Positions 8,406 through 45,900 of a DNA stretch of 64,000 nt are shown piece after piece (position 1 is the first letter of the stretch; the number at the start of each line of letters is the position of its first letter). Under the pieces are notes generated by a model. That model was given only the letters and a program-made list of their open reading frames with translations. It was not told where the DNA came from and made no database searches. The translations under genes and the position numbers were made by a program. Origin of the DNA: Oopsacas minuta. Its lineage: Eukaryota; Animalia; Porifera. The stretch lies in assembly GCA_024704765.1 (NCBI GenBank), contig JAKMXF010000365.1:868001-932000 (forward strand). The letters run 5' to 3'.

Positions 8406-9779
8406 ATGACTGATTTGGAAGTGCACCTGAAAGTTCAAGATCTCCATTCCTATCTCCTAACGTTACCTAAAGCAATCCTGGAGCGTGTCTACACGAATGC
8501 AGCTTGCTGTTTAATGGTATTTAGGGAGGTACCAGAGATAGGAAGGCATTTTATGATGCGTATGGCTTACATATCACAGCCGTTACCGATAAGTCTAATC
8601 CTATCATGGGTTAAACCACATAAAGAGGGAGAGGCTAATACGGCAATAAATCGAATGCTAAACTTGAGAATAATGTGTACAGTTAAAATACAAGGTAGTC
8701 AAGAAAAGGGTGTGGAGATTAATGAACAGTTTAATGACAATCTGAAACTCATATTCTCAGGTAGAAATCTGCAGCTAACAAAGACAGAACTGCTCGGAGC
8801 GGACAAGCACGGGAAAGGGTTGGAAGAGTTAGAAGTGTACGCTGATGAGCGGTGGAAAACAATTCTGAGTTTCATGGTTACACCTGAAAAGATGCAGAAA
8901 GAAGTGAATAGTGATTTAGTAGAAATATTAGTCCACTCAGGTTTGATGCACAGAGCTAGTGAAAGCCATCTGCCCACAATAACGCCAGGAGGATTCCAGT
9001 TCTTGTTAATGAACGAGACGAGACAGGTTTGGTTCTTCATGCTACAGTATCTACGTAGCTGTGACCAGAGGAATATGGATCTAGTTGAGCTACTCACCTT
9101 CATTTTCCAGCTGAGTATATCTACAGTAGGAAGTGATTATTCTACAGAAGACATGAGTGATACTCAGCTCAGATTCCTGCAACATCTCAGAGAGTTTGGA
9201 CTAGTTTATCAGAGGAAAAGAAAATCTAGAAGATTCTATCCCACTCGCATGGCTATTGATCTAATTTCTGGGTCAAAAGATGAAAATCCTCAGGGTAGGA
9301 ATAGAGGTTATTTGCTGGTAGAGACAAATTTCCGAGTAACAGCTTACACCAATTCACATCTCACTACCAACATACTCAGCCTGTTCTTACAGATCCTCTA
9401 CAGATTTCCCACTATGGTGGTAGGAATAATTTCCAGACAATCTATCCACGAGGCATTAGTTAACAGCATAACTTCTAGTCAGATTATTAGCTTCCTAAGA
9501 GCGAATGCACACCCAGCAATGCTAAAGAAGTCTCCTATTGTTCCTGCGACAGTGGAACATCAGATAATTCTCTGGGAGAAAGAGAGAGATAGATTGAGTT
9601 GCAATGAAGGCGTGTTATACAATAATTTTGAGACTGGACAAGATTTTGAAATTCTAAAAGACTTCGCAGAGAAGAACGGCCTCTTGATATGGGCTAGTAG
9701 CACCAGTAAGACAATGGTAGTCACCAAAGATGGTCACGATGAAGTCAGAAGGTATTGGAAACGGAACAAACCTCATTAA
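8406..9779 (+). CDS. GTF2H4: TFIIH subunit p52 (Tfb2), 457 aa, intronless
   Basis: Diagnostic motifs ITPGGFQFLL, LQHLREFGLVYQRKRKSRRFYPTRMA, LLVETNFRVTAYT and QIILWEKERDRL. Confidence 0.97.
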   Translation: MTDLEVHLKVQDLHSYLLTLPKAILERVYTNAACCLMVFREVPEIGRHFMMRMAYISQPLPISLILSWVKPHKEGEANTAINRMLNLRIMCTVKIQGSQEKGVEINEQFNDNLKLIFSGRNLQLTKTELLGADKHGKGLEELEVYADERWKTILSFMVTPEKMQKEVNSDLVEILVHSGLMHRASESHLPTITPGGFQFLLMNETRQVWFFMLQYLRSCDQRNMDLVELLTFIFQLSISTVGSDYSTEDMSDTQLRFLQHLREFGLVYQRKRKSRRFYPTRMAIDLISGSKDENPQGRNRGYLLVETNFRVTAYTNSHLTTNILSLFLQILYRFPTMVVGIISRQSIHEALVNSITSSQIISFLRANAHPAMLKKSPIVPATVEHQIILWEKERDRLSCNEGVLYNNFETGQDFEILKDFAEKNGLLIWASSTSKTMVVTKDGHDEVRRYWKRNKPH

Positions 9780-16175: not shown

Positions 16176-19100
16176 CAGTTTCTGATAATTTGAAAATGAT
16201 TTCAGCTGGGGTTTCATACTGTTGTCTTTATCAGACAAAATCTGTATTGCTTGATTCTCACCTAGTCCATGTTAATATGTTCTCACTCAATAAATGGAAT
16301 AGATTCTTATCAACATTTGTATTTTCCCCTATGTATAGCGTAATTTGGTTACGGCTTTTTGAAAAGTTCGTGAAAATGAATAATTCTTCAACCGAATACG
16401 GCCAGGAAAATATGTGATTTTATGACGTCAAAAAGGTGCTAAAATCTCGTTTTGGGCGGGAATTGGTTAAAATCAAGTGGTTATATTTTGGTGTTCCTTT
16501 TAATTCTTAATACTTCAGCGTGATCGGTTAAATAAGTAACCATGAATTATTCAATTAATTACTAATACACACTAAAAGTGGATATTTAAAATCATTCCAT
16601 AATATTAAATTATAATAATTATATATATATAGTGTATACAAATACTATTATTCTTATTCCTTCTCTATCGTTTAAAATTATGATTAATTCTCAATTTTAA
16701 CTGATAATATAATATTTGCCATTTTCAATTATTTCACCTTATATGGTAATATGGGATCGCTTAATATTAAAATAGAATTCCTAAATTCAATACTACATTC
16801 ACAAATTGTACATGCTTGATTAACTAATTATGACACTAAGAGCGAAAATAATAATAATAAGAGCAGCAAATTAGAGCATAACTCAAACCCTGGTACCAGC
16901 TGAACTACTAACTATTACAATGCTAGAATTGCTGATTATATTAAGTTTTGTGCGTTATAGGCACACACAACATAGCTTCAAATCACAAGCAAGAAAGATT
17001 TCTAGATCTTGCTAATAGCTAGTAGCAATGAGTTCAATACTTGTATCCTGTCCACATTGTATTGCTAAAGTAAGGTATGATAATTTGAATTCTCATATTC
17101 AGAGAGTGCATGGTGGTAACAAGCCTAGAACAGCAGAAGTGCGAGTAGACACAAGTTCAAACAGAAATACAGGCTATCCCACTCAACGCTCTTCCAGATA
17201 CAGAGATTCCACGACAGAGTATCAAAGGAGAGTACCATCTCATCTAGCTTGGAGTTGGGATAAAGGCACCTATGCTAACAGATATGATACCGATGATGTA
17301 GCGAGTATAAAACAAGAAGATTACTACACTACATCAGGCGATATGACTAGAAGGGTTAGCTCACCAGATGTAGTAACAAATGGATTGAATTCACATTGCA
17401 GTAGTGTAACTAGTTTCAGTCAGACATCAGAAATTCCTATCGTATCCGATCAACTAGATTTATCAGATAAAGAGACTAATAAGCCACAAACTAAGAGAAA
17501 AGAATCCCGTAATGATTGGATTGTCTTCTCTACCACAACAGATGTATTTACACAAAGACGTTCTGATGGTTTCATATGTCCTGTAACAAAGTGTAAGAGT
17601 AAATTTATTGAAGTAGAAGAAGTGATACAGCACGCATTTACTGCACATTTCTTAGAGAAATGTCCGTATTGTAAAGGAGTTAATTTCAGACCGCATAGTA
17701 AACTAGGAGATCACATACAACAGGTTCATAAAATTGATAAACAGGACAGATATACTTCTCCAAAAACTTCACCAAAGCAGAGTAGTTCTAATGTTCATAA
17801 TTACAAAATCCCGCCAACTACGAATAATGGAAGCAGAATATCTTCTAGCAAATGTAAACTGGAAACAAATATGAGTAATATAACCGCTGAAAAGACAAAA
17901 GTAAAAGTAAATTCACGAGAAATTCTACCATCAAAAATTCAGCCAAATTCTACAATTAAACCTCCACTAGTAAGCAAAGATATTCCTAAAACTTCACAAT
18001 CCAATTCGTCTAACATTAACAATTCAAGACCTACCCTACAAGCTAACAAGCCGAAAGCAATCGTTCAAAAAACAACGAAAATTACGTCGAAACCTAGCGA
18101 GGTAAAACAAGCACCAAGTGCTCATAATGTTACGTCACAAAAACCTGTTACAACTGTAATAAAACCGGACCCAAAAGTTGTTGAGACAGTAAAATCAAAA
18201 TACCCAAGTAGACCTACTACGCCAAACACAAGTTTACCTACCAGCTGTTTAGTAAACAAATCCGGAGAGACAATTAACACAAAATGCCCTTCAGTACTCA
18301 GCTCTAATAAACAAAACGTTTCATCTGCGACAGATGTACGTGATAGGAATGTTGAAACAGCCCACAACCTCCAGTTAAAAAAGGTTAGTATTGGAAGTAG
18401 TAATACAGATGTCGAATTTATAAATGCATTCAGAGATCCCAAATTAGAAAAAGATACAAATTTCAAGTTTGTCTATACAGGTGACCTCGTAGGATATAGT
18501 CTCAATATTATTTAATTATATTCAAGAATAACTAAATATAACAAATTTATTACTTATTTGAGTTTGAATCAAGAACTTAGTTTTTAGTTCCAATAACAGT
18601 ATTGTCACGTGTTCTGTGTTCACATTTGATTATTTGTACAGTCACCTCCGCTTAATTGGGACACGTCTCCAGGGACGGAATCATCTTCGTTCAAGTTAAT
18701 ACTAAATATTTTCGATTAATCGGGACAAACTCTGGTAATGGAATGAAAATTATTAACTCAATCAAGACGAAATTTCAATAGAGTGGTAACTTGCTTTAGG
18801 GGACTCTGTAACTGAGAAAATAGAAGAATGCTGCTCTTTAGTATCATTATTAGAAAATCTTGGTTAATTGGGAACTCCGCTAATCGGGACAAAAGGGCTG
18901 GAACCTATATGTCCCGATTAAGCGCGGAGTTGACTGTAGATAGGATATATAGTGAAACCTTAACTGCGTATTTCTAATAATAGTATAATACGTAAAGTAT
19001 TTGCGGTATTGAAGTGTTTCACCACACACTAATTGAAGTGTTATAATACAAACCCTTTTCTTTTCTGTTAGTAATTCTCTTATAACTCAATTACTGAAAT

Positions 19101-22100
19101 GTTACACGCAAATATTGCTATACGAAATGGAGCCTTCGCATTCACATTCATATTCTACCCACCAACAAGATATCTCCCCAATGGAATGTAAACCTTCAAA
19201 AGATTTTCTATTAAAGATGGATTCTCCTTGTCACCTGTCACCAGTCAGGTTTAAAATAGGAGAAGATGACTGTGGTGACAAGGAGATGGGAGCTAATGAA
19301 TATTATCTGGGTTATGATGATGAAAGTGATGACTGCGATTGGGATACAGAAATACCCGTGGATCAAAATACAGAAGTTGCCTCACCGGTATTTATAGATT
19401 TTTGTCAAAATTCAGATGCGGAAGAGATTTCTACAAATGAATCAAATTTTGATCAAACTAACTACGCAGTGATCTGTTCCCCTTTGGGCTCAGAAATCTG
19501 TTCCTATTTCTCACCGGATGCGGTGAGTTTAAATTCCATAGAGAATGGATTAATAGTAATTGAAGATATCGGGAAAACAACTAAAGAAGTTGGGATATCA
19601 GAGGATGGTATGGAAAAAAATAAACCTGAAATTGCGAGTAGTAAAGTAGAATGTGAAAATATAGGTAGTATTATTTCGCCTATACAAAAATGCTCTCCAA
19701 CTATTCCCTTTTTTGTTTCATCATTTGATTATAATCATAAAGTTGGTAAGTTAGATGTTAAAAATACCATAATCGATTACTTTTCGTGTGAATCTCAACA
19801 AAATAACTCAGTGTTACCATGCGACAATTCTCCGAGCATGTATTCTAGCCCCAGAAAGTCAAATTCTAGAAAGAGAAGGAAAAAGGGAAAGCGCAGATCA
19901 AGTTCTATACATTCTACAAATTCGTATCACTCAGAGAGAAAAAGCACTACAAGAAAAAATCATTCAATTAGTGCCAGTAGTGAAAGTAGTTATAAGAGAT
20001 CGGTTAGGTACTTTAGAACAAGATCTCAATCCTACAATAAACATTCAACAAAAGAATTAATAGGATTTCCAATAACTAGAAAAGACCGTAGAGCTCAACA
20101 TAGTCCAATTGAATCGACAAGAGAAAATAAGATTGCATGTAAATGTCCTGAATGTGAATATACGTCGAGTTCCAAAGAAATAATAGATCATTACTGTACA
20201 GCACATTTCATGCTAAGCTGTCCTAGCTGCGATCTCCCTATTCAGGAACCTTACTTCCTTCAGCACTGTAAGAACTGCAAGAGTTTAAAAGAAACGCTAA
20301 ATTGTCCTAGTTGCCAATTAACTTGTACTAATAATTCTTTGCTATCTCTTGCTATGCATATTAAGTTCTCACATCCTATAAAAAAGTGTGTTGGATGTAG
20401 CGAATTTTTCGTCCCACAGAAGTTTGCTAATCATGCGAAAAATTGTTTCTTTGAACCAAAAAACTCTTGTATCTGTCCTTTTTGTGAGATTAAGATTCCA
20501 ATGAATAATTTGAGTGAACACGTACTCACTCACCCGATAGCTGAGTGTCCTCTTTGCAACAAAGATATACCTCAGAAAGAAGCAGAATTACATATGGAAT
20601 CGTGTTATCTCGAGAAGGTTAATGATTGCGAAGAATCAGTTTTAGGAACTCTTTTCAATTGCCCTATTTGCAGACAACGGTATTCATTCGAAAAAATGCC
20701 AGAACACATAATAAAAAACCACCTCTCTCTCAATTGTGTATTCTGCTACATGGTTATGTCTCTAGAAGAGATGAGAGGGCATGTTGTGGTGTGTAGTCAG
20801 AAAAAATCAAATGAATAAGTGTAGCTTTTATAGAATATTTTAAGATACAAGTAATACTTATTTTATTCGATATGTTGTGTTATATCTATCAAAAAGTTAG
20901 AGTTTATTCATAGCTGATTTATTCTCTTATTTATTATAAATTTAGTTAACCAATGTTTGTATATGTATATGGAGGTGTAAATCTATATTATTAGATCTTA
21001 ATTTGTGTGTGTCTATCTGTCACGCTCCCAATAGAAAACAGGTTCAGTTCATAAAGTCTATGACCAAATATTACACAACATAATGTATATAAAGTAAACA
21101 ACTAGTTGAAATCTTAAAATATATTTGGAGAACTACTCTAAACGGCTTCAATGGGGTAACAAAGTACGCAAATTGTTCGCAAGCAGCGTAGCGTGAGCAA
21201 ACGAAACGACTCGCAATAAATAATATTGAAGAGATATATGTGTAATAATAACTGTATCAGTAAAATCCAAATAACTACCGATCTTTCGTTATACCTTCAA
21301 CTGGGGTGAGTCTGATTTCATACTTTTAAGATTTTCTTTCTCGACTTTCACCAAACACCTCTCAACATGACTCTCAAAATTAAATAAACCAAGAACACAT
21401 GAGCAAGCAGGACAATTCAACCTGTAATGAATAGTTAAAATGTGTCTAACCAGTTTCGTTGAGCTTGCTATAGTGTTCTTATTTGTGTTAAAGCAAACAG
21501 GACATTCTTTAATGGGTAAGGATTCTAAGTGATCTATTCCGATATGATCTATTAGTCTTAATGAACAGAACATTGGAGTGTCACATAAAATGCATTTAAC
21601 TCTCAAGTGACCCATCAAATGTCTGCCATAAAAAGCAGAAGTCACTATTAATCCACACTGATTACAATTAAAACCATTTTTCGCTTTGATAAAAACAGGT
21701 TCTTGAAAACAATAGGCTACTTCATCAAGATTAAAGAGAAATGGAGTGATTGCAGTTGTACAGATCCGAGGCTTGAATACATATGATAAATTCTCTTTGT
21801 GATTCTTCTGCTCAGAATCAGGAGTATCTACGGGTTTTGAATTTGTTGGTAACCGTTTGGAATTTGTAGGTAACGGTTTAGAATTTGTAGGTAATGGTTT
21901 CGAATTTGTTAGTGAAGATTTCGAATTCGTTAGAATCGTTGGTAAAAGTTTCTTTTTTGGAAAAAAAATCAATTTTACTGGTTTCGAATTAATTGGCAAA
22001 TAATTCAGAATTGTTGAAAAATTCCATTTTAATCGTTCCTTTGAGTGTGTTTCTTTCTCAGCATGACTTTCCTTAGGAGAATTTTCCATTTCTACTCCAA

Positions 22101-25100
22101 TTTTATGATTTGTAACTTGAGAGTATGCCTCGAATAATTCGCTTGTGTAACCAGAATCTGGATTTTTTGGATTTTGAAAACTTGAAATATATTTTCTATC
22201 TTCCAAATTATAAGAGAGAGGTGTAAGTGATCTACTGCGAGTTCTACTGAGTGACCTTCTGTATCGGTACTTTGTGTGTTTACTGCTAGTTCTACGATAT
22301 CTACTATAAGACCTATCAGATTTATTATACGACCTGTTATACCTGCTATAAGACCTATCAGATTTACTATACGACCTATTATACTACCATAAGACCTATC
22401 GAATCTACTATACGACCTACAAGATTTACTATAACGCTTATCAGATCTACTATACGACCTGTTATACCTGCTATATGACCTATCAGATTTACTATACGAC
22501 CTATTATACTTACCATAAGACCTATCAGATCTACTATAAGACCTATCGGATCTACTATACGGCCTACAAGATTTACTATAACACCTATCAGATCTACTAC
22601 ATGACCTACTAGATCTACTACACGACCTACTAAATTTATCATCAAATTCATCATATGATCTCCTATCTGATGACTTATAATCTCTTCTAGATTGCCTATA
22701 GTAATTCCTCTGTTCACTAGATCTGCAGGAATTTGATCCACCAGAATCACTACTACAAGATCTAGATCTATGGATCGAGTTTATAGGATAGGTTTTATCA
22801 TAGCATTCAAGAGATCTGCTACGTGATCGTGAGCTATATTCTAATGGCCTATCATCTTCAGTATCGGATATTCTCTTGGATCTTTTGCGAGATGTGCTTT
22901 GTGTTATTCGCATTGGTTGTGGAGGAGAAATAGTAATAATATTCGTAGGATAACTCAGATCTGTATCTGTATCTGTATCTGTATCGGATACCTCATCGAA
23001 CACATTACAATTTCCACTATTAGAGTCAGTGTGAGATTTGGCATCACTCTTATTGGCAGATTTAAGATCGAAGAGAGCATTAGATAGACAGTTAGTGCTA
23101 TCATCTGATGAGTCGAAACTGAATGGAGATACACACTCAGAGTTTTTATATAGTAAACGCATTAAGAGCGAGGAAGATTGATTGTTATTGAACGGAACCA
23201 AATCTTGATGAGGTTGAATTGAAGTAGGGGTATCTGAGCTAGATAGCATCATGGATGATGAGATATCTGTATACGAGTCTTGTCCATGTTTTACACATGG
23301 ATTAGTATCGACAGTAAGCAGTCCTTCATTAGAGGAATCTTCAAGTGGTGGGGTTGCGTGATATAAAGTGCACTTGGGTGTGTCGTACTCTTCAAAACAG
23401 AACCGGTTGATAGGAGGAGAGGGGACACCCTCAAAGTCGAAATAATCCTGACGAGAGGAGAAGTTGATAACAATAGGAGGAGAATGCAGATCGTATTGAG
23501 TAAGCGTAGAATCTTCAATTGTGTAATCTAGATTAGAACTATCTTCACAATCAGATAAAGATTGACAAAAGATTTGTAATTCTCTCTCTGAAGTTATACT
23601 TTCATTATTCTGATATATGTCTGTAGTGTAGGAATTGGAAGAGTTTTCTGGGTTAAACTCACATTCGGTTAAATGTATTTTGATATCAGCCAAGTAGAAA
23701 TATTGATAACAGAAGGGACAACCTTCTTCCATTATAGGACTGCTAGGTCTCCTGTTAATAGGGAGCAATCCATCGTGTGATAACATTCTAATTTATGGTG
23801 TTAACAGTGAACTGAGCTGAATACCGTAGAATTGTAAATACTCATGAGTTGATGATTATGCGAGTACACGTATATGCTAAGGGAGATGTTGACATTTGGA
23901 ACATGTTAACATCTACCGCGGGAGATGTTAACATTATTGGTTTATACATTTCCCTAAATGCTATTTCATGGCTTCTGGAACGCAATATTCAAAGGCGGTA
24001 TGGATAGCACCGTCAGTCACGAAATATATATGTATTTCCAACAGGGCAAAATATTTAAATGATAAGTTTAGTGAAAATAACCAATCCTTTTGTAAACCTT
24101 CCATTACATGTCTGACAGTCTGACAGCCATTCTACAATAAGTTCGATAGTATGTGAAGTAATAAGTATTTATCAAATAGTTTGTCAACAAATATGTGTTG
24201 TTTTCTTTGCGGTTAATTAGTTAAAATGATGGCAAAACGTTTCACTAGATCAAAGTGAAGTCAATACTTTGGTGAGTCTCGTGTATGTTTTCTAGTAAGA
24301 ACAATATTTAGAAGATGCATAAACCAATAATGTCAACATCTCTTTGGGAGATGTTAACGTGTTCCAAATGTCAACATCTCCCTTAGCATATATACGTAGA
24401 ATTGCTATACGTACACGTAGAGTAGATAATAATATAGCGATTATATTGGATATTCAGCCAAATGATAATTATTTCCACTATAAATACATCACGTTTAGGA
24501 TGCATTATATTCTGTTTACCTGATAGGACATAATATAAATTTTAGGAGTACCCAGAAGGGACTAAATATTAATATATCCAATCAATCACCATTTTTTACT
24601 ATACACGTAATTAATACAACTGTAATATAAAAAGGTGATCAATGGAGTAGCATGGGTTCGGAAAGTGGATATATTTCTCATTACTGGCCTGGAAGAACAA
24701 TGTAAGTTCGGAAATTTTCGGGTACACACTTCCTTGCCTATGCTATGAACAAGACGGATGAATTTAATATTATAATATTTGTGAGCTGTTGCCAACTCTG
24801 GAATATATTCCAATGATGAGAAGGATATAACTAATATAAATTTTCATCGCCACTCGATATAATAACTCTATCACCAGAATCCTCGAAAGCTGTGGTATTT
24901 AATAACAGTCCTGTAATTCACACAAATCATTGCTGTCACTATCAGATAATATCTCAATTACATCTATTGACTTTGTGGGAGCATTAAAATTAATATTATT
25001 TCGTTTATCTTCGGTATCAATGGTTTGCACTTCTTCATCATGTTTACGAGCTGACCGCGGCTGTATACTCATCACTCCGTCTAGGTTTAGATTCTTTGGT

Positions 25101-28100
25101 AGTGAGAGAGCCTCCACTGGCTTGAGGACCTCATCTCCATGTGCACCTAATCCCTGGCCAGGAATATACCCCATTTTAGTCATTAATATTAAACCAATCC
25201 CTTGGTATGTCTCTCCAATCCACCTCGTTACTATTCTGAATTCACTCCACATAAACAGGTGTAGTATCACTAATATTACAAGCAATTGTGTAATCTGAGG
25301 TCTGGCTATCAGGATTTGATTTCCGTAGTGATGATACAATTAATAGTTTGGCGTGCAAAAAATAATGTTTGGAGAATTCACGATACTTAATTGTTTACAA
25401 CATGTAGGTATAGGGCAATAAGAAGGCTGTATGTGTTGTTTCAAGTGCTTGGTTAATTTTTTGCACTTGACATCACAAATGGGACAACACTTTCTAAATC
25501 CGACGAATCTCCTCAAACAGACCTTTGTATGTGTAACAAATTTTCTAAAATGAATGATGACGTAACATAATGGGCAAACTAGTACAGCATGGAATCTCAT
25601 ATGAAGCATAAAAGTAACTTGAGCCTTATGAAAATTGGAAACAGTGATGGGTTTAGAGCAGATGGGACAGACAACCGTTATAGTGTGTTTTTAGGCTTTA
25701 TGGAACATTTATCAGTTCTACCAGTTTCTGTACTATTTTTAGAATATGCTGTAGTCATACTAATTCCTGTAAGATTTTGAATATGTTCACTCACATAATT
25801 ATAATTAGTGTGACAATCCGCGGGAAGAGTTTGGTAAGAAATTTCAGGTAGTAAAGGATGAGGACTAGCATTACTAGAAATTGGTACAAGAGAGTTGATT
25901 GAAGTAGAATGACTGTAAGGTCCTATAGCTGGAGGATTTGCAGCAAGATTATCTGGGAATTCAGAATTTGGATGAATTTCAGTATCGGAAACAAAATCTG
26001 GGAGATAATAAGCCATCTATGCACTAGCAGCATTAAACAATATTATAATCAAATAACCTTTGTGTCTGTTTAAACACAATAAATAAAAATATACAAACTA
26101 CGTTCAGATGGGCAGTACATTATACGTATTACATATCGAAGCATGAAGGCGGTCAGTATACGTATGAACGAGCTGCAGAGCTGTCTTTGTGCGAGTATTT
26201 TTGCATAATTATTCTTATAGCATAGGGACTACTAGTCAAAGCGATAAATAATTATCTCCGAGCGGTCTTCATTAGATGTGTTACTGGAATTTTGTCCCAG
26301 AGGTATCGACCCCGAATACTACAAGGTTTTAATCAATATTAATAAGTTATTATTGTGTTAAAATGCAAGAACTCTATTCATTGAAAAAATTATATTTAAA
26401 TATTCTACACAATTAATACTACTGTTGAAATCGGGTAATATTCCATATTTGATTGTCAAGATAACAAAATAACCCGTTATGCTGAACACTGATAGGATAA
26501 GATAAATTTGATAGTTAATATAGGCTAATTGACAATAAACATGAAGACTGTATATTATCTGCTATTTATTAGGCCATTCACTAATCAGTAAGTATACTGA
26601 AAATTCACTAATAAATATATACTATAGGACAAATAAGACAAACAGATTTTAATAGTTTACCCCCTCAGTTTGACAAATAACCCGAAGTGAAAAAAAAATC
26701 GATTATTGTAGTATATGGGAAAATCGAATGAACATTTATACGATGACTTGATGAAAAAAACGGAGTCAAAATAACCCGATTTCAACTGTAAGTCTAAAGA
26801 TAATCTTGATAGCCTTATGATAACAATATCTAAAACACAATTAGTAGAATAATTATCACAATGAAAACTACTTGAATTCGTAATAACGATCAACTACTAG
26901 TGGGAGATTTCTAATAGTGCTAGTTAATTCTCAGCCCAACTATATCTGGTAGATTTACAACATGTAGGTTAGAGTTATCCTGTATTTTTTCACAAGACAG
27001 CAAATGTGAACGAATCAGTTGAAAATCTTCAATCTCACTAAATTGACAGAAAGGACATGAGAATTTAGAAGTTGGTATAGCAGTGCTGTTGGTAGGATAA
27101 GACGTTTTAAGTTTCGATTGAATTGTAGGGGTGGACTTTGGGGGAGTAGGGGTAGACTTGGAGGGAGTAGGGGTGGTAGGGGTAGTTTTCGGCTTGTTTG
27201 TTGAAGTTTTAGGCATATTCTTTGGCACATCAACAGAAACGTTATGTATAACTACACACAATAAACCATGAAATGTGAATTCATTCTTTGACATAGCTGT
27301 ATAACAAATTGGACAGAGATAGGAATGCTCTGTGAGAACATGCTCAGAGAATCTTGTTTTGGAGACATGATTAAAACAGAAAGGGCAGCTTGGTCTAGAT
27401 GATTCAACACAGCTGTATAAGTGAGGTGTAAATTCACAAAGTTTCTCTGTGGACCAACCACAAGATTGACATTGAAAAATAGCATGCAATAGCATATGGG
27501 AAGATAGCTGAGTTTTCTTGCATTGCTTTTGACAGATAGGACAAGTAATTTTACCAGAGGAATTTAGAATAATTTTCTGCTGTTTTGTTAACTGAATTGG
27601 GGCCTTGCTTAAACATTGAATGGGATGAGTTCTGATAGTAAAACAAGGGATTGTATTATGACAGCCATGACATGTGTGGAGTTTGGTGATATGATTACGA
27701 TGGATATGTCTAACTGTTGTTGTAAGATCAGAAAACTTACGAGAACATCGAGGACATTTAAAAGGGATAGTTTGAGTTTGTAAGCAGGTTTGTAAATGAG
27801 ATTCAAATTTACCTTCGTTTATAGATCCATTACAGATAGGACACTGATGAGATATAAGAGCATACAATCGTGATTTAACGTCTAATTTGTCTGTAGATTT
27901 GTCGGGATTTTTATTTGGTGTTTGTACCGGCCTGTTAAGATCTTCAGGATTGGTATTTTTCTCAAAAAATACATGTTGTGAATAAGATGATTCATATACA
28001 CCTTGGGTTTGAGGGATACTATTAGAGTTCTCACTATTTGGAAAGTGCGGACTCTTCAGGAAATGTTCAACAGAACTCAATTCTTGTTCAGTAACCAGCT

Positions 28101-31100
28101 TCTGAATATGGGTAGACATGTGAATATTAAATTTGTTGTATTCAAAAGAATGATCGGGTGCTATAGGACATTTCAAACTAGGTACATGTTGTTTGAAATG
28201 TTTATTAGGTTTTGTATTTGGTAGTTTTTCATTACACAAAGGACACGTGACAGTTGCATTATGCGATTTTCTACACTCGTTGGTATGATTAGAGAATGTA
28301 CCCATGGATACAATTGAGGAACAGAGAGGACATATAACTTTAGTATGCATCTTCATATGTTTAGCAAACTTCTTTTTATTTTTAGAAATAGCTTTGGTAC
28401 AAATAGGACAATGTAATGGGTTTATAGTAGGAGGTGTTGGCTCGGGCTCAGGATCAAGAATATTGTCAGGAACTGAACTGGAGTGTCGAGTAGCTACGTG
28501 ATCATCCAAAACGCAAGGATTCATAAAAACATGACACATCGGACATTCTACTATCTGGTGACTCGTGCCAGAATGCCAAGCTGCCATTTGAAGGTTACGA
28601 AAGATAAATAGCTAATAAATATCAATTTATATTACTTATAGAATTTTCTGAAAAACTTATTGCATATATCAATATAAGTAATATGAGCAGAGTATTGCGG
28701 TTATGTTGTAACTGTTGAGGAGTTAAACAATATGGAAGTAATGAATTATTAATTCAATGAATCTTTGAGTATGTTAGTTTATTCTAAGGACTTTCTACTT
28801 CAGTATCACAGCAGTTAGAGTAAGGGAAGAGAATAACTAGAATGTCCTATATACAATTTACTATACAGGTATAGCGATAAGTAATTAGTTTACAAACCCA
28901 TATACAGATAGAATACAAAAAAGTGTTGTTTGTGATTAAGTAAACCTTTGAACAAAATTCGTAGTTGTTCTAAAAGGTAACGAATCCTCCAAATAGTAGC
29001 AAATACAACTAGTATGAACAGGAAATTGTATAAAAGTTAATAACGAGACAGGTCTAGAAATCAGAGCAAGATGGTATCTCAGAAAGTAATAATTGTGATG
29101 GGATGTGTGTCCATAACAGTACACTTAATGAGTGGGATACTACTGTTATTCACAGCTACAACTGGAATGTCAATTCTAAGTGGTTTAGCAGTGTATAATT
29201 CTATGGATATCGAGGTACCGGGAGAATTTAACTTCCTAGGAGCAGAGGTTGTACTAACAATAATATTTTACACACTGCTAATAATTCTAGCTGTGATGGG
29301 ATCTATATTCGCTATGCTAGATTCTAAATTCCACAGAGCTGCTATAGCCCTGCTGGTTACCTCACAAATACTAATAGTAATTGTAATGGTGTTGAATATT
29401 ATAGCAATTGGAGTATTCAATACGGAGAAATCTAGAGAGACTTTTGATGTACAGAAATACTACGTTCTCAACATCTTAATAGTATTCTATCTTGCTGGGG
29501 TGATGGTTTACGATACTGTCTTTATCGTGATGAAAATGTGTAGCACAAGATCAGATAAAGTCAATAATTAGCACAACAACACCTAACATATTTCCACGCG
29601 AAAAGGTACTATAAATATTATCAACCTGTTAAACTGATCAAATATGTCTTTATCAGTAAAAATATAATGTTATTTTGTATAATTTATACTAAATGTAATA
29701 AAACGCAATAAACATGTATGTCCAGATTTAACTGTATATAGTAACCAGAGTGGACCTACCATGAGCCAATGGGTCATGGTTGGCCATAGGTGACCCATGG
29801 TCCAGGTAAACTTTGATTTATAACTGTGCATTAGTTAAACCAGTCAACTAGTCCCTAGTCACCTCAGCATCGAGGGGCGTAAAATCCTCTTATTAACAGC
29901 TGGAGGCGAGTGTATAACTAGTACAGGGAAAGTCTGGATTCACAAGCAATAAATACTCTAAGACAAGTACTCAAACGGTAGCCCGCGGGCCATTCGCTGT
30001 CGCACACGGATAATTCACTTGTTTTCATTATTCATATATCTATACAGTAAATTGACGTGCTTCAATCGTCAGATAATAATTGTTTTTTCTAAACATCATA
30101 TAGAAATAATTACGGTTACTCTACCAATGCATTAATGTTCCTAGAATGAATAAAGTATTTGGTAACTATAGTTTGCATTTACGAATTCTATCAATTATTA
30201 GAGCTTCACAAGTATAATGTAGGAGGCAGAACCTAAATTGATAGTATAGCTTGAAAATTGATTAAACTAAAGCCAGAGGCAATCTATGATTTGTGGCCCG
30301 TAAGGCGGAGCCTAATTTTTAAAGTGGCCAGTAGATTTAAAAGTTTGAGCACCCCTGCTCTAAAACAACATCGAGTGGGTGTAAAATAGGTAAGTTGACT
30401 GAAATAAGAGGTGCGAGTTAACCAAAATAGTACGAGTTGACTGGCTCCCGTCAAATCAAATGAAAGTAAATCAAAGTGTGTAATAATGAATAAATAATCT
30501 ATTTAATACGTAATTATTTTGAGTAAGTTTATTAAAAAATGAATTTATTAGGCACTTTGCAAGGCCAAGAAGTCCAACATTTCTTCGACGACATTTAGCA
30601 ATGTTAATAAGATAATTTTATTACTTTCTTATGACAGCAACAGGAGAAAGATAAACTAAAAATATCCCATAAATTAATTAAGCATAAAGATATGCGAGAA
30701 GGAAGTATATTGCAACCTCGATATTATAGAAAATAAGGACATGCTAAGGGTGATGTTATTATGATTAAGTATTCTTTGTAGAAATACGTAGTTGTGTATA
30801 AAAGGTATGGATCCTCTAAATAGTGCCAAATATGAACAGTAATTTGTATAAAGGTCACTTAACGAGACTGGAGTATATATAGAGAGCAAGATGGTATCTC
30901 AGAAAATTAATATTCGTCATGAAATGTGTATCCATAAAGCTACACTTAATGAGTAGTATACTGGTGATATTAAAAGCTACGACTGGGTGCAAATCCTGAA
31001 CGTTATAGTTCTAATAAACACTCCTCTTAGTGCTAAAGTACTAGGAGAATTCAACTTCCTAGGAGCAGAGGTCGTACTCACACTAATATTCTACACACTG

Positions 31101-34100
31101 CTAATAATTCTAGCTGTAATGGATCTATATTCGCTATAGATCTACTGATCACCTCACAGATACTGATAGTAATCGTAATCAATTTAAATATTGCCGCAAT
31201 TGGAGTATTCCATACTGGGAAACAACTAGTACTATATTCACAATATCATTATTGTATTATATCTTGCTGGAGTGATGGTTTACGAGATTGTCTTTATCGC
31301 GATGAAAATGTGTAGCAAAAGATCAGATGCAAGTTCAGATACAGTCATAATTAGCATAACAAATGATTTCCCATAGATTACTTTAATATAAATAATAACC
31401 AAGTTACCAACTGATCAAATATGTATTTATCTGTGGGATTGTAATACCTATTATTTATGTAGAGGAATAAAATCAAACTATAAACTATGTCAATCAATAT
31501 TTCAACTAATTGAACACTCTATGAATTGTAAGTTCTATGAGAAAGGTATGCTGGGGACAGAAATTATCGAAGCTTTGCGAATTACTACATCACCATTTAT
31601 CATAGATAATCGTCATCATCAAATAGAGAAGTTAGCTCACAATCTGAGTTTGAGTCTGGAGAGATTGATATCAGAGGATTAGTAGAGAGCTGTTTATCGT
31701 TAGTAGAAATAGTTGGTTTGTTTGCAGGTAGTTTCCTCTTTGATACAGGACCTTGATTGATAGGAGGTTTAAGAGCTAATGCAGGAAATTCACTATCTGA
31801 CAGACTGATAGTATTAGATACTTTAGAAACAGGCTTAGAGGTAGTAATATTCAAAGTTTCCATTGCATGTGACTGTACTGGCATTTGTTTTGGATGTATA
31901 GCTATCTCAACCTTATGAACTGAAGCTGTAGCTGTACTCAACTCTTGGGATACCTTCTTCTGACAAGATACAGCATGTCTAGCAATTGAATCACACTTAA
32001 ACTTCTGTTTACAAGAGGGACAAGATATTTTAAGAGTTGCATGGAAGCTATGAATGTGATTATTGTTCTTATTTGCTAATGAAGTACCGCACAAAGGACA
32101 TGTGTCTTGATTAGGACGTTTTTTCAGACATTTAATGACATGGTCATCAAAATTCGTCTCAGAAATATCCCTTGCATGGCAGAGAGGGCAGGCATGTTTA
32201 ATGTGAACTTTCTCAATGTGTTTCTGTAGAATTCCATCTGTTGAACACACAGTTGTGCAGAATATGCACTTGAATTGTATTACAGTTTTAACAGGGTTGT
32301 CTACTGCTTTTTTCCGTTGTGAATTAGGATTAGCAATAAATGGGTTTGACTGACTGCGTTTATTGTATATTTTAATACAATTCTTTATATGTCCTGCAAA
32401 CGTATCAAATGTGAATGATTTCTCACACCCAGGAATAGAACATGTAAGTTTAGATATATGCTTAATTTTGACATGTCTCGTACTGCCGTCAGGAGATCCA
32501 CAAATGCTACATGGAAACTGATCAAACGTGTAAATAACCATACACTCAATAAGATGGGACCCTAGGTCATGAAGAGGATAATCGTTGGAGCATCTGGGAC
32601 AGCAAAATATTGCATGCAATTTCACATGGCAATCACGTACAAATTGAGGCATTATCTTTCTACAAAGAGGACATTGCCATCTGATTTTCATTGGATCGGT
32701 TACGGGCTGAGCTACAACTGATTTCACCTTAGGGGTTATAGGGTTTAGATTGGGTTGTAATGGCGCTAGAGATTCTGCCATGAAGTGAATTTAACTATAA
32801 ATGAATTAGTGTGTGAAGCAAAGAAATTCTGGTGTACTGATTGTCTTGCAATATCTTGTAATTATGGCAAAAGATTAAATACTATACAGAAAAGCAAATA
32901 ATCATCATGTATGATCCATATTCCATTACATACACAAACTGAATGTATATATTGAAAATGGGTCAATTGCATATATGAATCAATGTGTAGAGAAAATCAA
33001 TAATTATAATTCCAGAAATGAATGAATCTTCTGAATACCCCAAAAAATACAATTCCAAAATCTCAAAATCTCAAAATCTCTGTCTTCACAAACCATGCAA
33101 TTGATAATATAACATCAAGGGAATTAATTAATTCTGAGACCCAATAGATTGTTAATAGAAACTACCTGCATTCCAGCAGGAATATTCCTACACTCAGCGA
33201 TATGATTCTCCAGTAACACATCTCTACACTGATAATTACAGAAGAGACAAGTTACTTGAGATTCATATCTTGTTTGTACAGTATTCGCATAACTGCGATT
33301 TGAAAGAGAAGCAGAACTAATTTGTTTCCGAGCTGCAGGAATATCCTCTTCCGAATAAGAACTCTCCTCAGAAGATTCAATCTCAAGTTGTTGGTACAGC
33401 TGGATAACTTCAGGGTCTAGACTAGGATGGTCTTGGAACAGCTGTGCACTCATTACACTTAGTTTAGCACACTTATTAACATGTTTGCTAAAGTTATTAG
33501 GACCATAACTATCCTGACAGAAAGGACAGGTCAGCTGCCGATGAGTACGATGTATGTGAGTTGAGATTTCTCTCACGCTATGACACTTCGTTTCAGAGCA
33601 ATAAGGACACAGATAAGTAGGCCGTCCTTTAACTTGCTTAGCTCCGTATCTCCCCAAACACTCCTCTAGATGTACTTTGAATGAACTGTGAGCAAGTTGT
33701 TTGCTGCAGATAGGACACTTATGTGTGATATGATTCTCAGTCATATGTCGTCCCATCATTCTAAGAGGACAGTCATCGTTACAAATAGGACAGCTGATCT
33801 TCTGACCCATACTAACATAAGGAAAGGAGACTAGGTCCTCTGGGTATCCTCCCTTCTTACCCCTCTTCTTATTATCTGTAGGCAGGAGAACGTAGTCCGA
33901 GTCTGAGGGGTCAATGAAAGGAGCGAAGAACGGCTTAGACTGATGATGACTGCCAGAATAATTGCCTTTACACCTAGCATTAGTTTCATAGTCATAAATC
34001 AATTCTTCATAATCTGAGCTGTCATCTGTCAGAGATTCAGAATCTGATGGCGTGTCAAAATCATCTTCAAACTCTCTAAACTTTTGGAACACCCCCTGAA

Positions 34101-37100
34101 GCAGAGGAGACTGACTGGCACCAGGAGAACTATTCCTTACACTACATTGATTCAAATGTGAAGTTACTCGCTTTGCTCCTAAAGTCCCTGAACAAATAGG
34201 ACAGCATAGGGTGAGATGAGATACAGTGAGATGCTTAGCTATATTTGTAACAGAATCTTGTTTCTTACATGCGTTGCACTTCATAACACCAGCACTACTA
34301 GGTGTTACATTCTTGGGTATACACTTGTTGAGGAGATGAGTAAACAGACCAGACTTATTAAATCTACTCTTACAGAAAGGACATAGAATCTTAAAATGAG
34401 ATTTAACATGACTTCTCAGCTTCTTATCATGCATGTACGTGTGGCAAATAGGACAGCTGTGGTTAGACTGGATATCAGTCTGAAATAAATCAGAGTATTT
34501 GTAGGATTTATTGACAGCTGATGAGTAGCTAGTTAGGTAGGGATCTGGCGGATCACGTAGTTGTTGGTATTGTTTGGTTCGCTCCTTATCATGATGCTTC
34601 TTCCTCAAATGCTGCTCAATATATTGGAATCTATATCGACAGAATGGACATGGAACTGTCAACTTGGGACAAGCATGTAAGAGATGGGTTTCCATAGAGC
34701 TAATAGATATAGATGCGAGACAATGTGGACACGTTCCGGGTGATATCTGCTGACCAGGTTTTGGCCTCGCAGGACAGAATTGATTGAGATGTCTTGTCAA
34801 GCTGGCAGGTTTGACATATGCATTGCATAAATGACATCTCACATTTTTAGGAGGAGAACTGGTTGCTGGTAAGTTTGTGGCCATAATAAATGAATCTCAA
34901 ATATTCTAGTACAATTCAGTTACTCCATAATCTTCATAAAGATATTAGTTATTATGGGAAGCGTAGAAGACACTTTAATAATATTCAGTGTCATGTTACA
35001 AATGTGATGACTAAGTCAGTCAGTAGATGATATTCGTAGTAAATAATAAAATCGTACTTGTAAGTATAAATATAGCAAAAGATATATCAAGATTGCAAAC
35101 TAAAATATAATAATAGGGCATAAAGAAATATGTAAAGACAAACCTAATATCTTTAGACATCCTTCTTGTATTGGCTTGCAAGGAAGATCGAATGAATGAG
35201 AATCACAAAATGGAGGAAGGTAGACACCGGTTTTAGACAACTCACATTCTGGACCGGTTGTTATCAATCTCTGTAGAAAGAAGAATATTAGTCACAAAGT
35301 TTATAAATCGTTAATATTACCAAATAAAGACCGACGTATCATTCAAAGCACCTGGTTACAAAATTATTTAATATATTTATCAAATGTTATAGCTACAGCA
35401 AGTAAGGGAGGATTTCAATAACTACAATGCACTACAAAAGTCACAATTTGGCACGATCAATTCAAACATACTGCTGGTACATAAGTATGTTAAATACATC
35501 TATTGCTTAGGCTAAATTATATTTATTCATATGTAGGTTATAAAAACATCATATACAATTCCCGATGATGTTCATATGCCTGACATCCACAGTCGGGGAT
35601 TATCTACGTGTTTGGCGGGTACCTAAAAGTGCCAGTTTAGCAGCAATGAAAGACACAAAGTGGTGACCATGAGACCCAAGTTTGTACAGGATCAATTGGA
35701 TACAGGCGAAAAAACTGCCATCCAAGGGAGAGTTCATACAAGAAAATCTGCCACCAGTTCCGGTCAGACATTCCTTAAACCCCTGCATTAACTGTGTTAA
35801 CAAATACGTAAGCAATTAAACATACTCACTCACCATGTTAGCAATATTAAGGTCGATTGGTAGAAAGTTAGAAACTGTAACATTTGTAGGACACGTGTGA
35901 TGCTGAATCCAGAATACTACAAACATAGGGAATAGGAAAATAATAATACTACTATATCAAGGTCATCAACAAACTTAAATAATCGGCACAGGGAATTTCT
36001 ACATAGATTGATTCTCGGAGGCTCATCAATCACATGGCCACGACAAACTTGTCCTCTGTCTACACTACTTACGACCCTACCAATAATAAGCATCTAGTAT
36101 ATGTACTCAATACTAACCGTGTGTAGAAGAAGAGTTTTTAGAAGATATCTTATCTGCAGCACTCTTCACTTCTAGATTAAACTTAGGGAGAAGGTGAGGG
36201 AGTAAAGGGCTCGGTCTGAAACAGCTAAAAATAACATAAAGAAAGAATATCATAGCCTATGATAATACGAATGTATTAATCCAACAATCTTGTTTATTAA
36301 TATTTGATGAATATCATCGCAGGGAGTGAAATGACTTTTCTACATTTCAAACAATCCAAGAATAAAACTGAAAAATCAATCGCTCACTTCTCATAACATT
36401 AGTAATTCGCACAATTAGGAGATCATAGTGTTGGCAAAAGGCAGATAAACATCAGTTTTAGACAAAATGTGTTGTTACACACTCTTAATCATACTATTGT
36501 CCCAAACAATGTAATCATGCTCCTAAAGCAGCATCCAGTACTCCTAAATAATACCCTCACTATTCCACTATAATTACTAACCATACTCTTGGAATTAAAG
36601 AGAGTTGATATTTGTAAGAATGCTGCAGGTTTTCTTTCTTAATAATTTCTATCCTCTTCTTATAGCGATTAAATAAGTTCTTAACCTGATCAGTGTGCAT
36701 GTAAGGACTGTAAGTATTCAGAAGCATGTGTAGATATCTAAATAATTAATACAGTAATTAATAATATTAAGTAATATACAGTGGTAGTGTCAGTCACAAA
36801 CGGGCCTATGGTAACGGGGAACTTCTGGAAACAGAGTGGAAAATAAATAGAGCGAATTAATATATATAACATTAACTTTTAAGAACAACGCAAATAATTA
36901 TTACCTCACCGAAATGTGAGAGATTCCTTCTTAGTTCTTCTACAAATATTAAACATGAGATATAAGATCTGGGACTGGAGGAGTGGCCAGCCTCTTTCCT
37001 TATTAGCTAGATACAAAAGGTTAATATTTAAAATATGATAAGCGAAGTCAATTGAGTTAGTAGGTAATAATTACATAAAGGAGTTCTCTAACCAGCAACC

Positions 37101-42960: not shown

Positions 42961-45900
42961 TTAAATTGTAGAACTAGTTGAATTGAGTCCGCTAGGAGGA
43001 TAGAAAGCATGAGTAGAGGGAGGCAGAGGTAATTCATTCTGCACTATCTCATTCAATAACGGAGTTGTAGGTACGGGACTGTATGAGTTGGTGTGATATA
43101 TGTTTGAGTTAGTGTTCATATTAAATGCGGTAGAGTTAGCGTGATGAGGATATGAGTTTAATGGGCTAGGACTATACGCGTTAATAGCTGAATGAGTGTT
43201 ATAAACAGGGTTAGAGTTCTGGTGCTGGGGATAGGGGGTGGTGTTAGCACCCATGTAGAGGTGTGAGCAGGAGGGCTGAGAAGGTGTCCTAGCGATAGGA
43301 GAGTAAACAGGGTGTTGCATGGGGATTGGAACCTTTGGGAAGAATGCAGGAGTTAACTGGTGTTGATGTTGTAATGGTGTAATCGGAGTAATAGGTTCAG
43401 GTAGAGGAGAGTAAGCATCCGAGTTTGTATATCTCTTAGGAAAGTAGTTAGGATAGTTTTGTATGTATTTAGGCATCTGTGAGGTATCCATTAATTCATC
43501 GGGTTGTGGTCTAGCAGGAGAGCTCATGAATGGAGAATGGACCTGTTTCATAGTCCTAGCAGCTGGGTATGTAGGTAGAGATGAGTATACTCCAGGAGTA
43601 GTGGGTCTCGTGTCCCATGGTCCCATCGGGTAGGGTGAGTTGCTAGGATAGGGTGTGTTAAGGGGTGTGGTAGGAGTATAGGGGTAAGGAGGGGTTGGAT
43701 TGGGAGGATACGGAGACTGAAATGTGAACTTAGCAGCATGAGAAGGTTGAGGTGTAATGGAATCTCTAACTGGTATAGAAGTAGCCTGGAAGTTATCAGA
43801 ACTCTCTTTCTCAAATTTGATTTTATTCTGAGCAAACGTTAGAGGAGTTATACGCGTAGAAGAAGGAGATATATTCAGATTCTGTAGAAGAGCTGAGTGT
43901 GACTGGTAGGGGAGAGGGGAGATAGGCTCGTGGGTTTGAGGAGGTTTCCTACGCTTAGCAATACCTAAAATAGCTTTAAACTTGTTAGAAGATAGATTAG
44001 TAATAGTACTGTTGTTATCCTTGATATGAGAGTCAGTTAACTGCTCTACTCGAGCTCGTACTCTCTTTATCTTCTCTTTATGTTTAGCTTGTATATGTAT
44101 ATCACTCTCATTACCCTTATCACGGAAGATAACGTGTAGATAGTGCTCGTAGCATTCAGATGGTATTCTTATTTCAGCGTGAATAGAAGTTAGGTAGTCT
44201 GATACAAATGACCAGTTTAGCTCTTGAGAAGGAGCTATTGATACCAATCCCAGTGGAGATTCTAAGTGATTCAAAACACAATGACACAATCTCCATTCAG
44301 AGGGTAACAGCCAGGGAGGATGAGCAAAGTGTTCGGGGGACAAGGTTGGCGACTTCTTGAGGGGTTCGTTGATGAGTTTTGATTTTAATTTCTTTTTGAT
44401 CCTCTGTTTATCTTCTTCAGATTTAATTGATATAAACAGATTATTTATCTGAGGGAGATCTTTCATTTTACGAATCAAACTCTTTCTATGAATATTAGAG
44501 GATTGAGTAAACTCTGTATCAGCTGTGGTTACAGACTGTAGTTGAGGAGGTTTGACCTTATAAACACCCATCTGTTCTTCACTCAGAAACATGATAGGCC
44601 CATTGGTACCAGTATATATAAGTTCTCCACCTGTATTGTACAGGGATGATATGAAAGGATCAACATAGATTCTGCTATCTGTCTCTAAGACAGGAGAGAG
44701 GATATCATAATCCATAAGATCTGTATCAGACGTGTAGGAGGGAGGGGGAGTAGGGGCCCGACTGGGAGAGGTAGAAGAAAGAGGAGTGGAGGGAGGTGAG
44801 TCGAAATAGTAGCCAGCCGGGCTATACCCTAAAAAATGGTTTTGTGTTTGATCTGATTCTCGTGCGAGTATAGAGAATATATTAGAAGGTGAGTGTTTGA
44901 ATGGAAGATTATGTAAATTTCTCTCCAGATAGAGGAGAGCAAAGTTCTCAATCGAATTCAGCTCTTCCTGTAGAGATAGGAAGTCACTCTCTATCTCAGA
45001 CCTCAAGGTTATCGGGAGAATACTAGAAGTTAAATTGTCTCTGTCACTCTGTTCTAGAATATCATTCTCCTCACTTATTTTAGCTTCTGTTGTTGCGTGT
45101 TTAGCGAATTTCGCATCTGTGTCTTCTTCAACTTCGAATAGAAGTGAAGATAAATTGTTACCATCTTCTCCAATTTTAGCAGCAATCTCTGTCAAACCTT
45201 TATCTAAGTCAGAAGAAGATTCAAAGAATTTTGTTGTAAAATGTCCTTCTTCTATAGCAAGTTCTCCTAACAACTTCTTTTGTTGTGATTTCTTTAAAAT
45301 ATTCACTTCAATAGTTCCTTCACAAATCAATCGATAAATGTGAACATTTTTAGTTTGTCCGATACGATGACATCTATCTTGTGCCTGAGCATCCATGGTT
45401 GGATTCCAGTCTATATCATAGAATATTACAGTATCAGCTCCTGTAAGGTTCATTCCAATACCTCCACTCCTTGTGGAGAGAATAAATACAAATATACTCG
45501 GATCGTTATTGAATCTCTCAACCAGATAGAATCTATCCTCTGGGGAGGTTGATCCGTCTAATCGGAAGTATTTATACCCATGGTAGTTGAGGAATACTTC
45601 TAGGATATTGAGCATACGAGACATCTGAGTAAACACTATAACTCTATGCCCCTCAGTCTTAAGCTGATAGAGTAACTTGTCTAGAACTTGTAGTTTACCG
45701 CAGTCATACTGTATCAGTCTAGTTTGTGGGAGTTGAAGGTAATCGTAGGACCTAAATATATCCCAGCTGTTACAAATTGACTCAGATATATGTCTACGTA
45801 TATAGCATTGATCTACAGTACTCTCGTAACACCATGGAGTGTCTAGAGCCGAGGTAGTGACTAGCCTCGGGGTCTGTGGTTTAACAGAGGGAATATACTG

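Follow-up and report, generated by a model that had tools for sequence, protein, structure and literature searches.

Zinc-finger cluster of Oopsacas minuta

The window analyzed here is a 64-kb stretch of the genome of the glass sponge Oopsacas minuta (NCBI GenBank assembly GCA_024704765.1, contig JAKMXF010000365.1, positions 868,001 to 932,000 of the forward strand), and positions within it are counted from its first letter. Between 17028 and 34884 the window carries a cluster of seven single-exon zinc-finger genes, ZF1 to ZF7, which lie on both strands as long open reading frames (ORFs; Table 1). Their products belong to a lineage-restricted family that combines known finger types into a novel repeat. 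When the whole window was scanned in six frames, 49 of the 50 finger-pattern matches fell inside this 17.9-kb cluster, a clustering far from chance. By the same kind of pattern scan (C-x2-4-C ... H-x3-6-[H/C]), ZF1 has 3 fingers, ZF2 and ZF6 8 each, ZF3 5, and ZF5 and ZF7 12 each, with 2 in the open piece of ZF4 and 3 in its intact orthologue. ORFs and scan together confirm the seven finger-bearing loci of an earlier annotation made from the sequence alone (the original prediction), and the fingers quoted there are present. The start and stop positions of ZF1, ZF2, ZF5, ZF6, and ZF7 match those of their orthologues in other assemblies, supporting their single-exon status.

Table 1. Features of the zinc-finger cluster, with positions in the 64-kb window
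Feature	Position	Strand	Description
ZF1	17028..18515	+	495 residues; 3 C2H2 fingers, one alone and then a pair with a 4-residue linker
ZF2	19127..20818	+	563 residues from ATG; ORF opens at 19115, true ATG at 19127
ZF3	21289..23786	-	832 residues once the assembly indel is mended
ZF3 arginine/serine (RS)-rich tract repeats	22260..22657	-	21-nt tandem repeats encoding an SDRSYSR-like tract
ZF4 remnant	24899..26016	-	broken; G-patch in last ORF
ZF4 G-patch domain, ZGPAT type	25109..25204	-	Pfam PF01585, 31.5 bits (cutoff 22)
ZF5	26920..28587	-	555 residues; 12-13 fingers; lone C2HC finger and ...LPDIVGLRIN at the C-terminus
ZF6	31600..32781	-	393 residues; 8 fingers, as two four-finger modules; acidic C-terminal tail
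ZF7	33124..34884	-	586 residues; 12 fingers; best-conserved member
ZF7 N-terminal three-finger domain	34573..34863	-	C2HC, C2HC, C2H2; TRAF-like H-x4-C-P-x4-V-x-C spacing
ZF7 four-finger module (two di-finger units; the family's higher-order repeat)	33457..33813	-	
ZF7 C-terminal module	33127..33249	-	lone C2HC finger and ...NLLGLRIN C-terminus; common to the ZF5 lineage

A repeated di-finger unit and a four-finger module

The recurring unit of the family is a C2H2 finger followed, after a linker of 3-6 residues (usually 4), by a C2HC finger. Among 51 strict units of this kind from four species, the linker is 4 residues long in 46 and 3 in the other 5, and only the zinc ligands are invariant in their alignment. 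The two finger types alternate strictly in ZF6 and ZF2, the latter carrying four strict units with 4-residue linkers at its C-terminus behind a Lys/Arg/Ser-rich basic stretch, and in the pattern scan linkers of 3-6 residues alternate with linkers of 7-10 or more. A motif scan found no TGE[KR]P-like 7-residue Krüppel linker in any of the seven cluster proteins. The original prediction had described both the short-linked C2H2 and C2HC unit and a family that lacks TGEKP linkers and is not Krüppel-like, and both descriptions are borne out.

A profile of ZF7 residues 358-476 gave full-length matches in ZF2, ZF3, ZF6, ZF7, and an eighth family member encoded on another contig, with two each in ZF2, ZF6, and ZF7, which indicates that two di-finger units form a four-finger module of ~110 residues. 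AlphaFold2 modeling of this module from an alignment of 29 modules returned four beta-beta-alpha fingers with a predicted local distance difference test score (pLDDT) of 90.8 and a predicted template modeling score (pTM) of 0.75. Because this pTM is high, the model suggests that the four fingers are held in a fixed arrangement and are not beads on a string. The closest Foldseek matches of the module were CTCF arrays and, in second place, TRAF6 (PDB model 3hcs; template modeling [TM] score of 0.28), at an E value of ~5e-4 but with TM-scores of only 0.24-0.28. The VIA fold search returned a packed ZAP1 finger pair (Z 5.2, root-mean-square deviation of 3.5 over 61 residues). Whole ZF7 had no match among PDB sequences at an E value of 1 or better, and the ESM Atlas was uninformative, yielding generic C2H2 clusters only, with structural TM-scores all at or below 0.25. 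The N-terminal domain of ZF7 was modeled with a pLDDT of 88 and a pTM of 0.73; among its 12 fold matches with Z of at least 2, the top four were TRAF4 (Z 3.3), Cep104 (Z 3.0), TRAF4, and TRAF5/6 arrays, all of them weak (Z only 2.5-3.3). Most modules carry a net charge of +4 to +15, and three modules of the ZF2 lineage range from -8 to +2. Their surface residues differ among paralogues and are kept among orthologues.

Intact and broken members

ZF3, which consists of a single C2HC finger near the N-terminus, an RS-rich tract of heptad repeats, and four C-terminal fingers, is intact, and the public assembly is off by one base. Its overlapping frames are separated by one shift at ~22381-22385, within the 21-nt repeats. 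Contigs of three sequencing runs (X1-X3) carry an extra T behind 22384 (indel 22384/22385) that is absent from the public assembly, and since this T restores the frame, ZF3 is read through as 832 stop-free residues. These read contigs derive from one sample that is possibly the assembly's own source, but they are an independent reconstruction of its reads. The public assembly can therefore be corrected at this point, where a single missing base splits the gene.

ZF4, in contrast, is truly broken in O. minuta, unless two unseen introns rescue it. On the minus strand, an N-terminal ORF (25678-26016) is followed by a frameshift near 25680, a finger ORF (25343-25687), an in-frame TAA (25340-25342), and the G-patch ORF, and across 24363-26499 read contigs and assembly are identical, with zero differences. 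An intron removing the stop codon was considered but seems unlikely, since no convincing pair of donor and acceptor sites would bring back the missing finger histidines. Therefore, of the five intact and two broken genes in the original prediction, the break in ZF4 stands, whereas the break in ZF3 is a one-base assembly error. Intact ZF4 orthologues of 470 residues (species B) and 521 residues (species C) combine fingers, a G-patch, and an acidic Ser/Asp tail. The C-terminal ends of the ZF4 orthologues, a hydrophobic core with a Ser/Asp run, resemble a SUMO-interacting motif. Next to the ZF4 stop, at ~25332, 54 additional bases are present in a relative sampled by a different study (run X5, ~92% alike). 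In the window, 18 codons may have been lost from the fourth finger.

RNA-processing domains and a C-terminal motif

Three further parts of the family proteins had escaped the original prediction: the G-patch of ZF4, the RS tracts of ZF3 and the eighth member, and a C-terminal motif in ZF1, ZF5, and ZF7. G-patch domains are known activators of DEAH-box RNA helicases, and an RS domain is a mark of nuclear proteins involved in splicing. The G-patch scores higher in the ZF4 orthologue of species B (PF01585, 47.1 bits) than in the broken copy. Outside the family, the ZF4 G-patch region best matches proteins from a clam, an acoel worm, and a mayfly that are annotated as ZGPAT. The species B G-patch is 57% identical over 58 residues to that of O. 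minuta's own ZGPAT orthologue, a 455-residue protein with a CCCH finger and a G-patch whose gene lies on the same contig, 105 kb from the window (contig positions 1037501-1038868). This ZGPAT gene is the likely source of the ZF4 G-patch, and ZF4 has the appearance of a domain-shuffled chimera in which family fingers are fused to a G-patch copied from ZGPAT.

The RS domains of ZF3 and the eighth member are defined by composition only: RS/SR dipeptides number 26 per 100 residues in ZF3, 20 and 28 in its orthologues, and 16-28 in the eighth member and its four orthologues. In the ZF3 orthologues the RS tract is kept even though its repeat unit has turned over. Proteins of the ZF5 and ZF7 lineages end in a single C2HC finger followed by a conserved C-terminal motif (...LVGLRIN), of which ZF1 has a variant (...DLVGYSLNII), and this motif is probably a docking peptide. 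Taken together, the G-patch, the RS tracts, and the C-terminal motif suggest that the proteins act in the nucleus or with RNA rather than in immune signaling. Elsewhere in ZF7, residues 325-335 (33880-33912, minus strand) form a short acidic stretch followed by Tyr/Phe-x-Leu-Leu-Pro; this stretch is kept in all four ZF7 orthologues and resembles an LC3-interacting or similar docking motif.

Conservation and turnover of the cluster

Relatives of ZF7 in three ENA assemblies (species B, C, and D) are 66-67% and 47% identical to it, and around them a common gene order can be traced: RPL6, RPS5, a TRAPPC9 fragment, ZF7, ZF6, a small membrane-protein gene on the other strand, ZF5, ZF4, ZF3, ZF2, and ZF1. 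In species B a single best counterpart exists for each of the seven genes, with order and orientation unchanged, and most of the genes are present in species C and D as well. Identity to species B is 36% for ZF1 (B_475), 45% for ZF2 (B_592), 37-51% for ZF3 (B_981, which together with D_580 represents the ZF3 orthologues), ~41% for ZF4, 44% for ZF5, 52% for ZF6, and 67% for ZF7, and paralogues within the window are only 22-28% alike. Measured against ordinary neighboring genes, which are 70-87% identical to species B, ZF1 to ZF6 are fast-evolving and ZF7 evolves at an average rate. Conservation is concentrated in the zinc ligands (92-99%), with 44-64% for other finger residues and 30-55% for the remainder of the proteins. 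Nonsynonymous differences (pN of 0.18-0.33) are far less frequent than synonymous ones (pS of 0.66-0.72), though silent sites are near saturation (pS of 0.66-0.78) and the ratios of 0.08-0.25 are hence rough. Because the zinc ligands are conserved and pN lies far below pS, selection on the cluster proteins is clear from these alignments.

Turnover within the cluster is limited. Species C has four extra cluster genes, at least three of them finger-bearing, and one (L009:16614-17690) is made up of the ZF7 N-terminal three-finger domain in duplicate, indicating that this domain moves as a unit. In species D, ZF4 is not at its place. Because gene-for-gene order is otherwise kept, the cluster is best read as an old one with slow gain and loss. 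The fast birth-and-death array envisaged in the original prediction does not fit one-to-one orthologues standing in the same order in another assembly.

Family size and taxonomic range

Scanning the 61.5-Mb genome with the unit profile gave 17 matches, all in the cluster except one, which lies in a gene on contig C277 (209981-213793, minus strand; LOD99_3606). In the product of this eighth member, about 1260-1270 residues long, four di-finger units come after a greatly extended tract of Arg, Ser, and Pro. Four further assemblies contain orthologues of it. At least this member is known already, being listed by NCBI as a hypothetical protein of O. minuta. A profile of four ZF7 orthologues searched against 1.84 billion representative proteins found 53 at an E value of 1e-3 or better. 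Strong matches among these were cluster members from sponge assemblies or two proteins of Logan run SRR2064712, which come from transcript-like contigs of 2.6 and 4.6 kb with little beyond the ORF. Weak matches were unrelated finger arrays, including UBZ-, WRNIP1-, and Spartan-type proteins and beetle poly-zinc-finger proteins. With so few relatives, the family looks restricted to glass sponges and close kin, in agreement with its original description as lineage-specific. Species B, C, and D are themselves presumed to be glass sponges from their shared gene order and the 70-87% identity of neighboring genes.

Proposed function and alternatives

We propose, at about even odds of being right, that these proteins are nuclear adaptors that serve as rigid finger platforms for proteins and/or RNA, several of them tied to RNA processing. 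Eight old genes, seven clustered and one on C277, would encode modular zinc-finger adaptors in which two di-finger units form a basic, rigid, TRAFD1/XAF1-like four-finger module as the binding platform. Since each paralogue keeps its own surface residues, each would probably have its own partner. ZF4 would contribute a ZGPAT-type G-patch and thereby a domain able to activate a DEAH-box RNA helicase; ZF3 and the eighth member would contribute an RS-rich tract of the kind that typifies splicing-related SR proteins; and the ...LVGLRIN end of ZF1, ZF5, and ZF7 would serve as a probable docking peptide. We further speculate, although we think it rather unlikely, that the family provides glass sponges with spliceosome or RNA-helicase adaptors of their own, made by repeating a TRAFD1/XAF1-like di-finger into rigid modules of four fingers that would read RNA or protein and joining these to a copied ZGPAT G-patch, RS domains, and a new docking peptide.

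Several observations weigh against the nuclear adaptor model. RNA-processing parts are confined to three of the eight members, and with ZF4 broken in O. minuta and missing from its place in species D, the link through the G-patch is dispensable. Matches of the module to any solved multi-finger arrangement are weak, neither the Foldseek TM-scores nor the best Z of 5.2 being high. The E value of 1.1e-6 that relates the module to O. minuta's own TRAFD1-like array (see below) comes from a single hhalign comparison of Cys/His-rich sequences and may be inflated. A search of sequencing runs for the O. minuta cluster returned only DNA-like contig sets (one sample and one relative) and no RNA run.

The original prediction raised a possible tie to ubiquitin, and the C2HC fingers could be UBZ4-type readers in adaptors for stress, DNA-damage, or immune signaling, an idea that we now regard as distinctly doubtful. 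The ligand pattern fits, and the C2HC half of the unit profile matches WRNIP1 (3vhs, E 5e-5) and RAD18 (2mre, E 7e-5), if weakly, while the whole unit profile matches the tandem UBZ of TAX1BP1 (E 1.6e-6); zf_UBZ, WRNIP1-type, and Spartan-type finger proteins are also among the few weak matches outside the family. However, ordinary C2H2 arrays such as CTCF match the unit profile better than UBZ fingers do, and no family protein matches Pfam zf_UBZ. In UBZ4 fingers a Pro-hydrophobic pair in the beta-loop contacts Ile44 of ubiquitin; the corresponding knuckle, C-P-[VILMF]-C, occurs in 14 of 28 C2HC fingers of the family, but it is common too in fingers that do not bind ubiquitin. A second contact is made by WRNIP1 Asp37 with ubiquitin Arg42 (PMC4370504). 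This Asp, placed at His+2 from the numbering in that study and the x11/x3 spacing, is found in none of the 28 C2HC fingers, with Glu in 3. Most modules are also strongly basic, which speaks against ubiquitin reading. Modeling the ZF7 four-finger module, with zinc, in complex with O. minuta's own ubiquitin gave no answer (score 0.00) and counts neither way.

The basic charge would suit sequence-specific DNA binding, and the proteins could be transcription factors of an unusual C2H2 type. DNA-bound CTCF arrays are the best Foldseek matches, and surface residues are paralogue-specific yet kept among orthologues. Nevertheless, TGEKP linkers are lacking, a linker of 4 residues falls short of the canonical Krüppel-type spacer, and TM-scores against the DNA-bound arrays are only 0.24-0.28. 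The rigid arrangement predicted for the module is unlike beads on a string, and G-patches and RS tracts usually belong to RNA machinery, so we consider this role improbable. That the ORFs are transposon-derived or decaying and nonfunctional is scarcely credible and is contradicted by the data. Repeated elements do lie between the genes, ZF4 is broken, and a distant look-alike in another assembly adjoins a reverse transcriptase gene. Yet the genome holds only eight copies, the genes are not flanked by terminal repeats, and both gene order and orientation persist across assemblies whose silent sites are saturated, with zinc ligands conserved almost throughout.

Glass sponges branched off early among animals and have a strongly reduced gene set, and the genome of O. 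minuta is compact (PMC10280926). Families invented and kept by glass sponges show the additions made by the lineage rather than its losses. A small finger unit, otherwise seen as one copy per protein in TRAFD1/XAF1, serves here as a building block that is repeated, has long been kept in fixed gene order, and is joined to RNA-processing parts. If the proposed adaptors do read RNA or spliceosomal proteins, they would widen the known role of this finger type. If they are spliceosome or helicase adaptors in particular, a finger type known only from protein-binding signaling adaptors would have been recruited to RNA processing in one animal class.

Neighboring genes and repeats

Inside the cluster, a gene on the plus strand (29071-29571) encodes a 166-residue hydrophobic, probably membrane-spanning protein of no Pfam family; it stands at the same place in all three other assemblies, with 54-78% identity. 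A second copy lies 1.8 kb downstream (30883-31445), where the DNA is 73-91% alike and split into small frames. Between ZF3 and ZF4, an element resembling a miniature inverted-repeat transposable element (23871-24392) contains nested inverted repeats (47-nt arms, 96% complementary; 28-nt arms, 93%), and its summed contig depth of ~3-12x that of the flanks indicates that it is repeated in the genome. Between ZF2 and ZF3 lies a dispersed repeat (20900-21299) with summed contig depth ~20x that of the flanks and many loose contig ends. In species D, a true TRAF-like gene that the window lacks lies beside the cluster (L010:7111-8487). Further single-frame genes in the window encode TFIIH p52 (Tfb2; 8406-9779), a 1621-residue SNF2-family ATPase (42961-47826), WAPL (50908-53493), a FLYWCH-finger ORF (56927-57472), and a UAA-family sugar transporter (59820-60746).

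Comparison with known finger systems

The closely spaced classical finger pairs recall zf-Di19 proteins (plant Di19, KCMF1, and RNF114/125/138/166), and with PF05605 (cutoff 27.5 bits) ZF5 (49.1), ZF7 (43.7), and B_981 (28.7) pass as sums of three to four weak stretches, while ZF1 (22.5), ZF2 (14.5), ZF3b (16.8), and ZF6 (15.2) stay below the cutoff. In contrast to the family, the Di19 model has a longer spacer between its two fingers, and the cluster proteins have no RING or ZZ domain. A genome-wide per-locus scan at an E value of 0.001 found no single two-finger Di19 domain in the cluster and four such loci elsewhere (31.7-64.3 bits). The TRAF-type zinc finger (PF02176, cutoff 27 bits) reaches 17 bits at the N-terminus of ZF7 (E 0.0098).

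With UBZ4 fingers such as those of RAD18 and WRNIP1, the family shares the ligand pattern C-x2-C, 10-14, H, 3-4, C (x11 and x3 in UBZ4), but its fingers are predicted to stand in rigid arrays, whereas UBZ4 fingers stand alone. The ZF4 lineage and ZGPAT share the same type of G-patch, and ZF4 has family di-fingers where ZGPAT has a CCCH finger and a Tudor-like part. ZF3 and the C277 member resemble SR-related proteins in their extended Arg/Ser tracts (RS/SR dipeptides at 19-26 per 100 residues), which all orthologues retain; the differences are the lack of an RRM, the attachment of the RS tract to finger arrays, and a ZF3 repeat built of heptads that contain Tyr.

The closest known layout is the finger array of TRAFD1 and XAF1, a likeness already noted in the original prediction and now supported. 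In TRAFD1, a zinc finger binds a protein partner (PMC4438057). No family protein matches PF21366 (TRAFD1/XAF1) at an E value of 1 or better. O. minuta has a TRAFD1-like gene of its own on contig C66 (PF21366, 40.5 bits), whose array runs C2HC, 6 residues, C2H2, 4 residues, C2HC, 6, C2HC, 6, and a partial finger. Aligned with this array, the family module reached an hhalign probability of 90.9% over 71 columns (E value as given above), covering the first three fingers of the C66 array. Both systems thus show a C2HC finger, a spacer, a C2H2 finger, a 4-residue linker, and a C2HC finger, and neither has a RING or catalytic domain, as had been predicted for the cluster proteins. The TRAFD1/XAF1 proteins have one N-terminal array, mostly of C2HC fingers with 6-residue spacers; the cluster family, in contrast, repeats the C2H2 and C2HC pair up to six times per protein, and its G-patch, RS tract, and C-terminal motif are foreign to TRAFD1 and XAF1.

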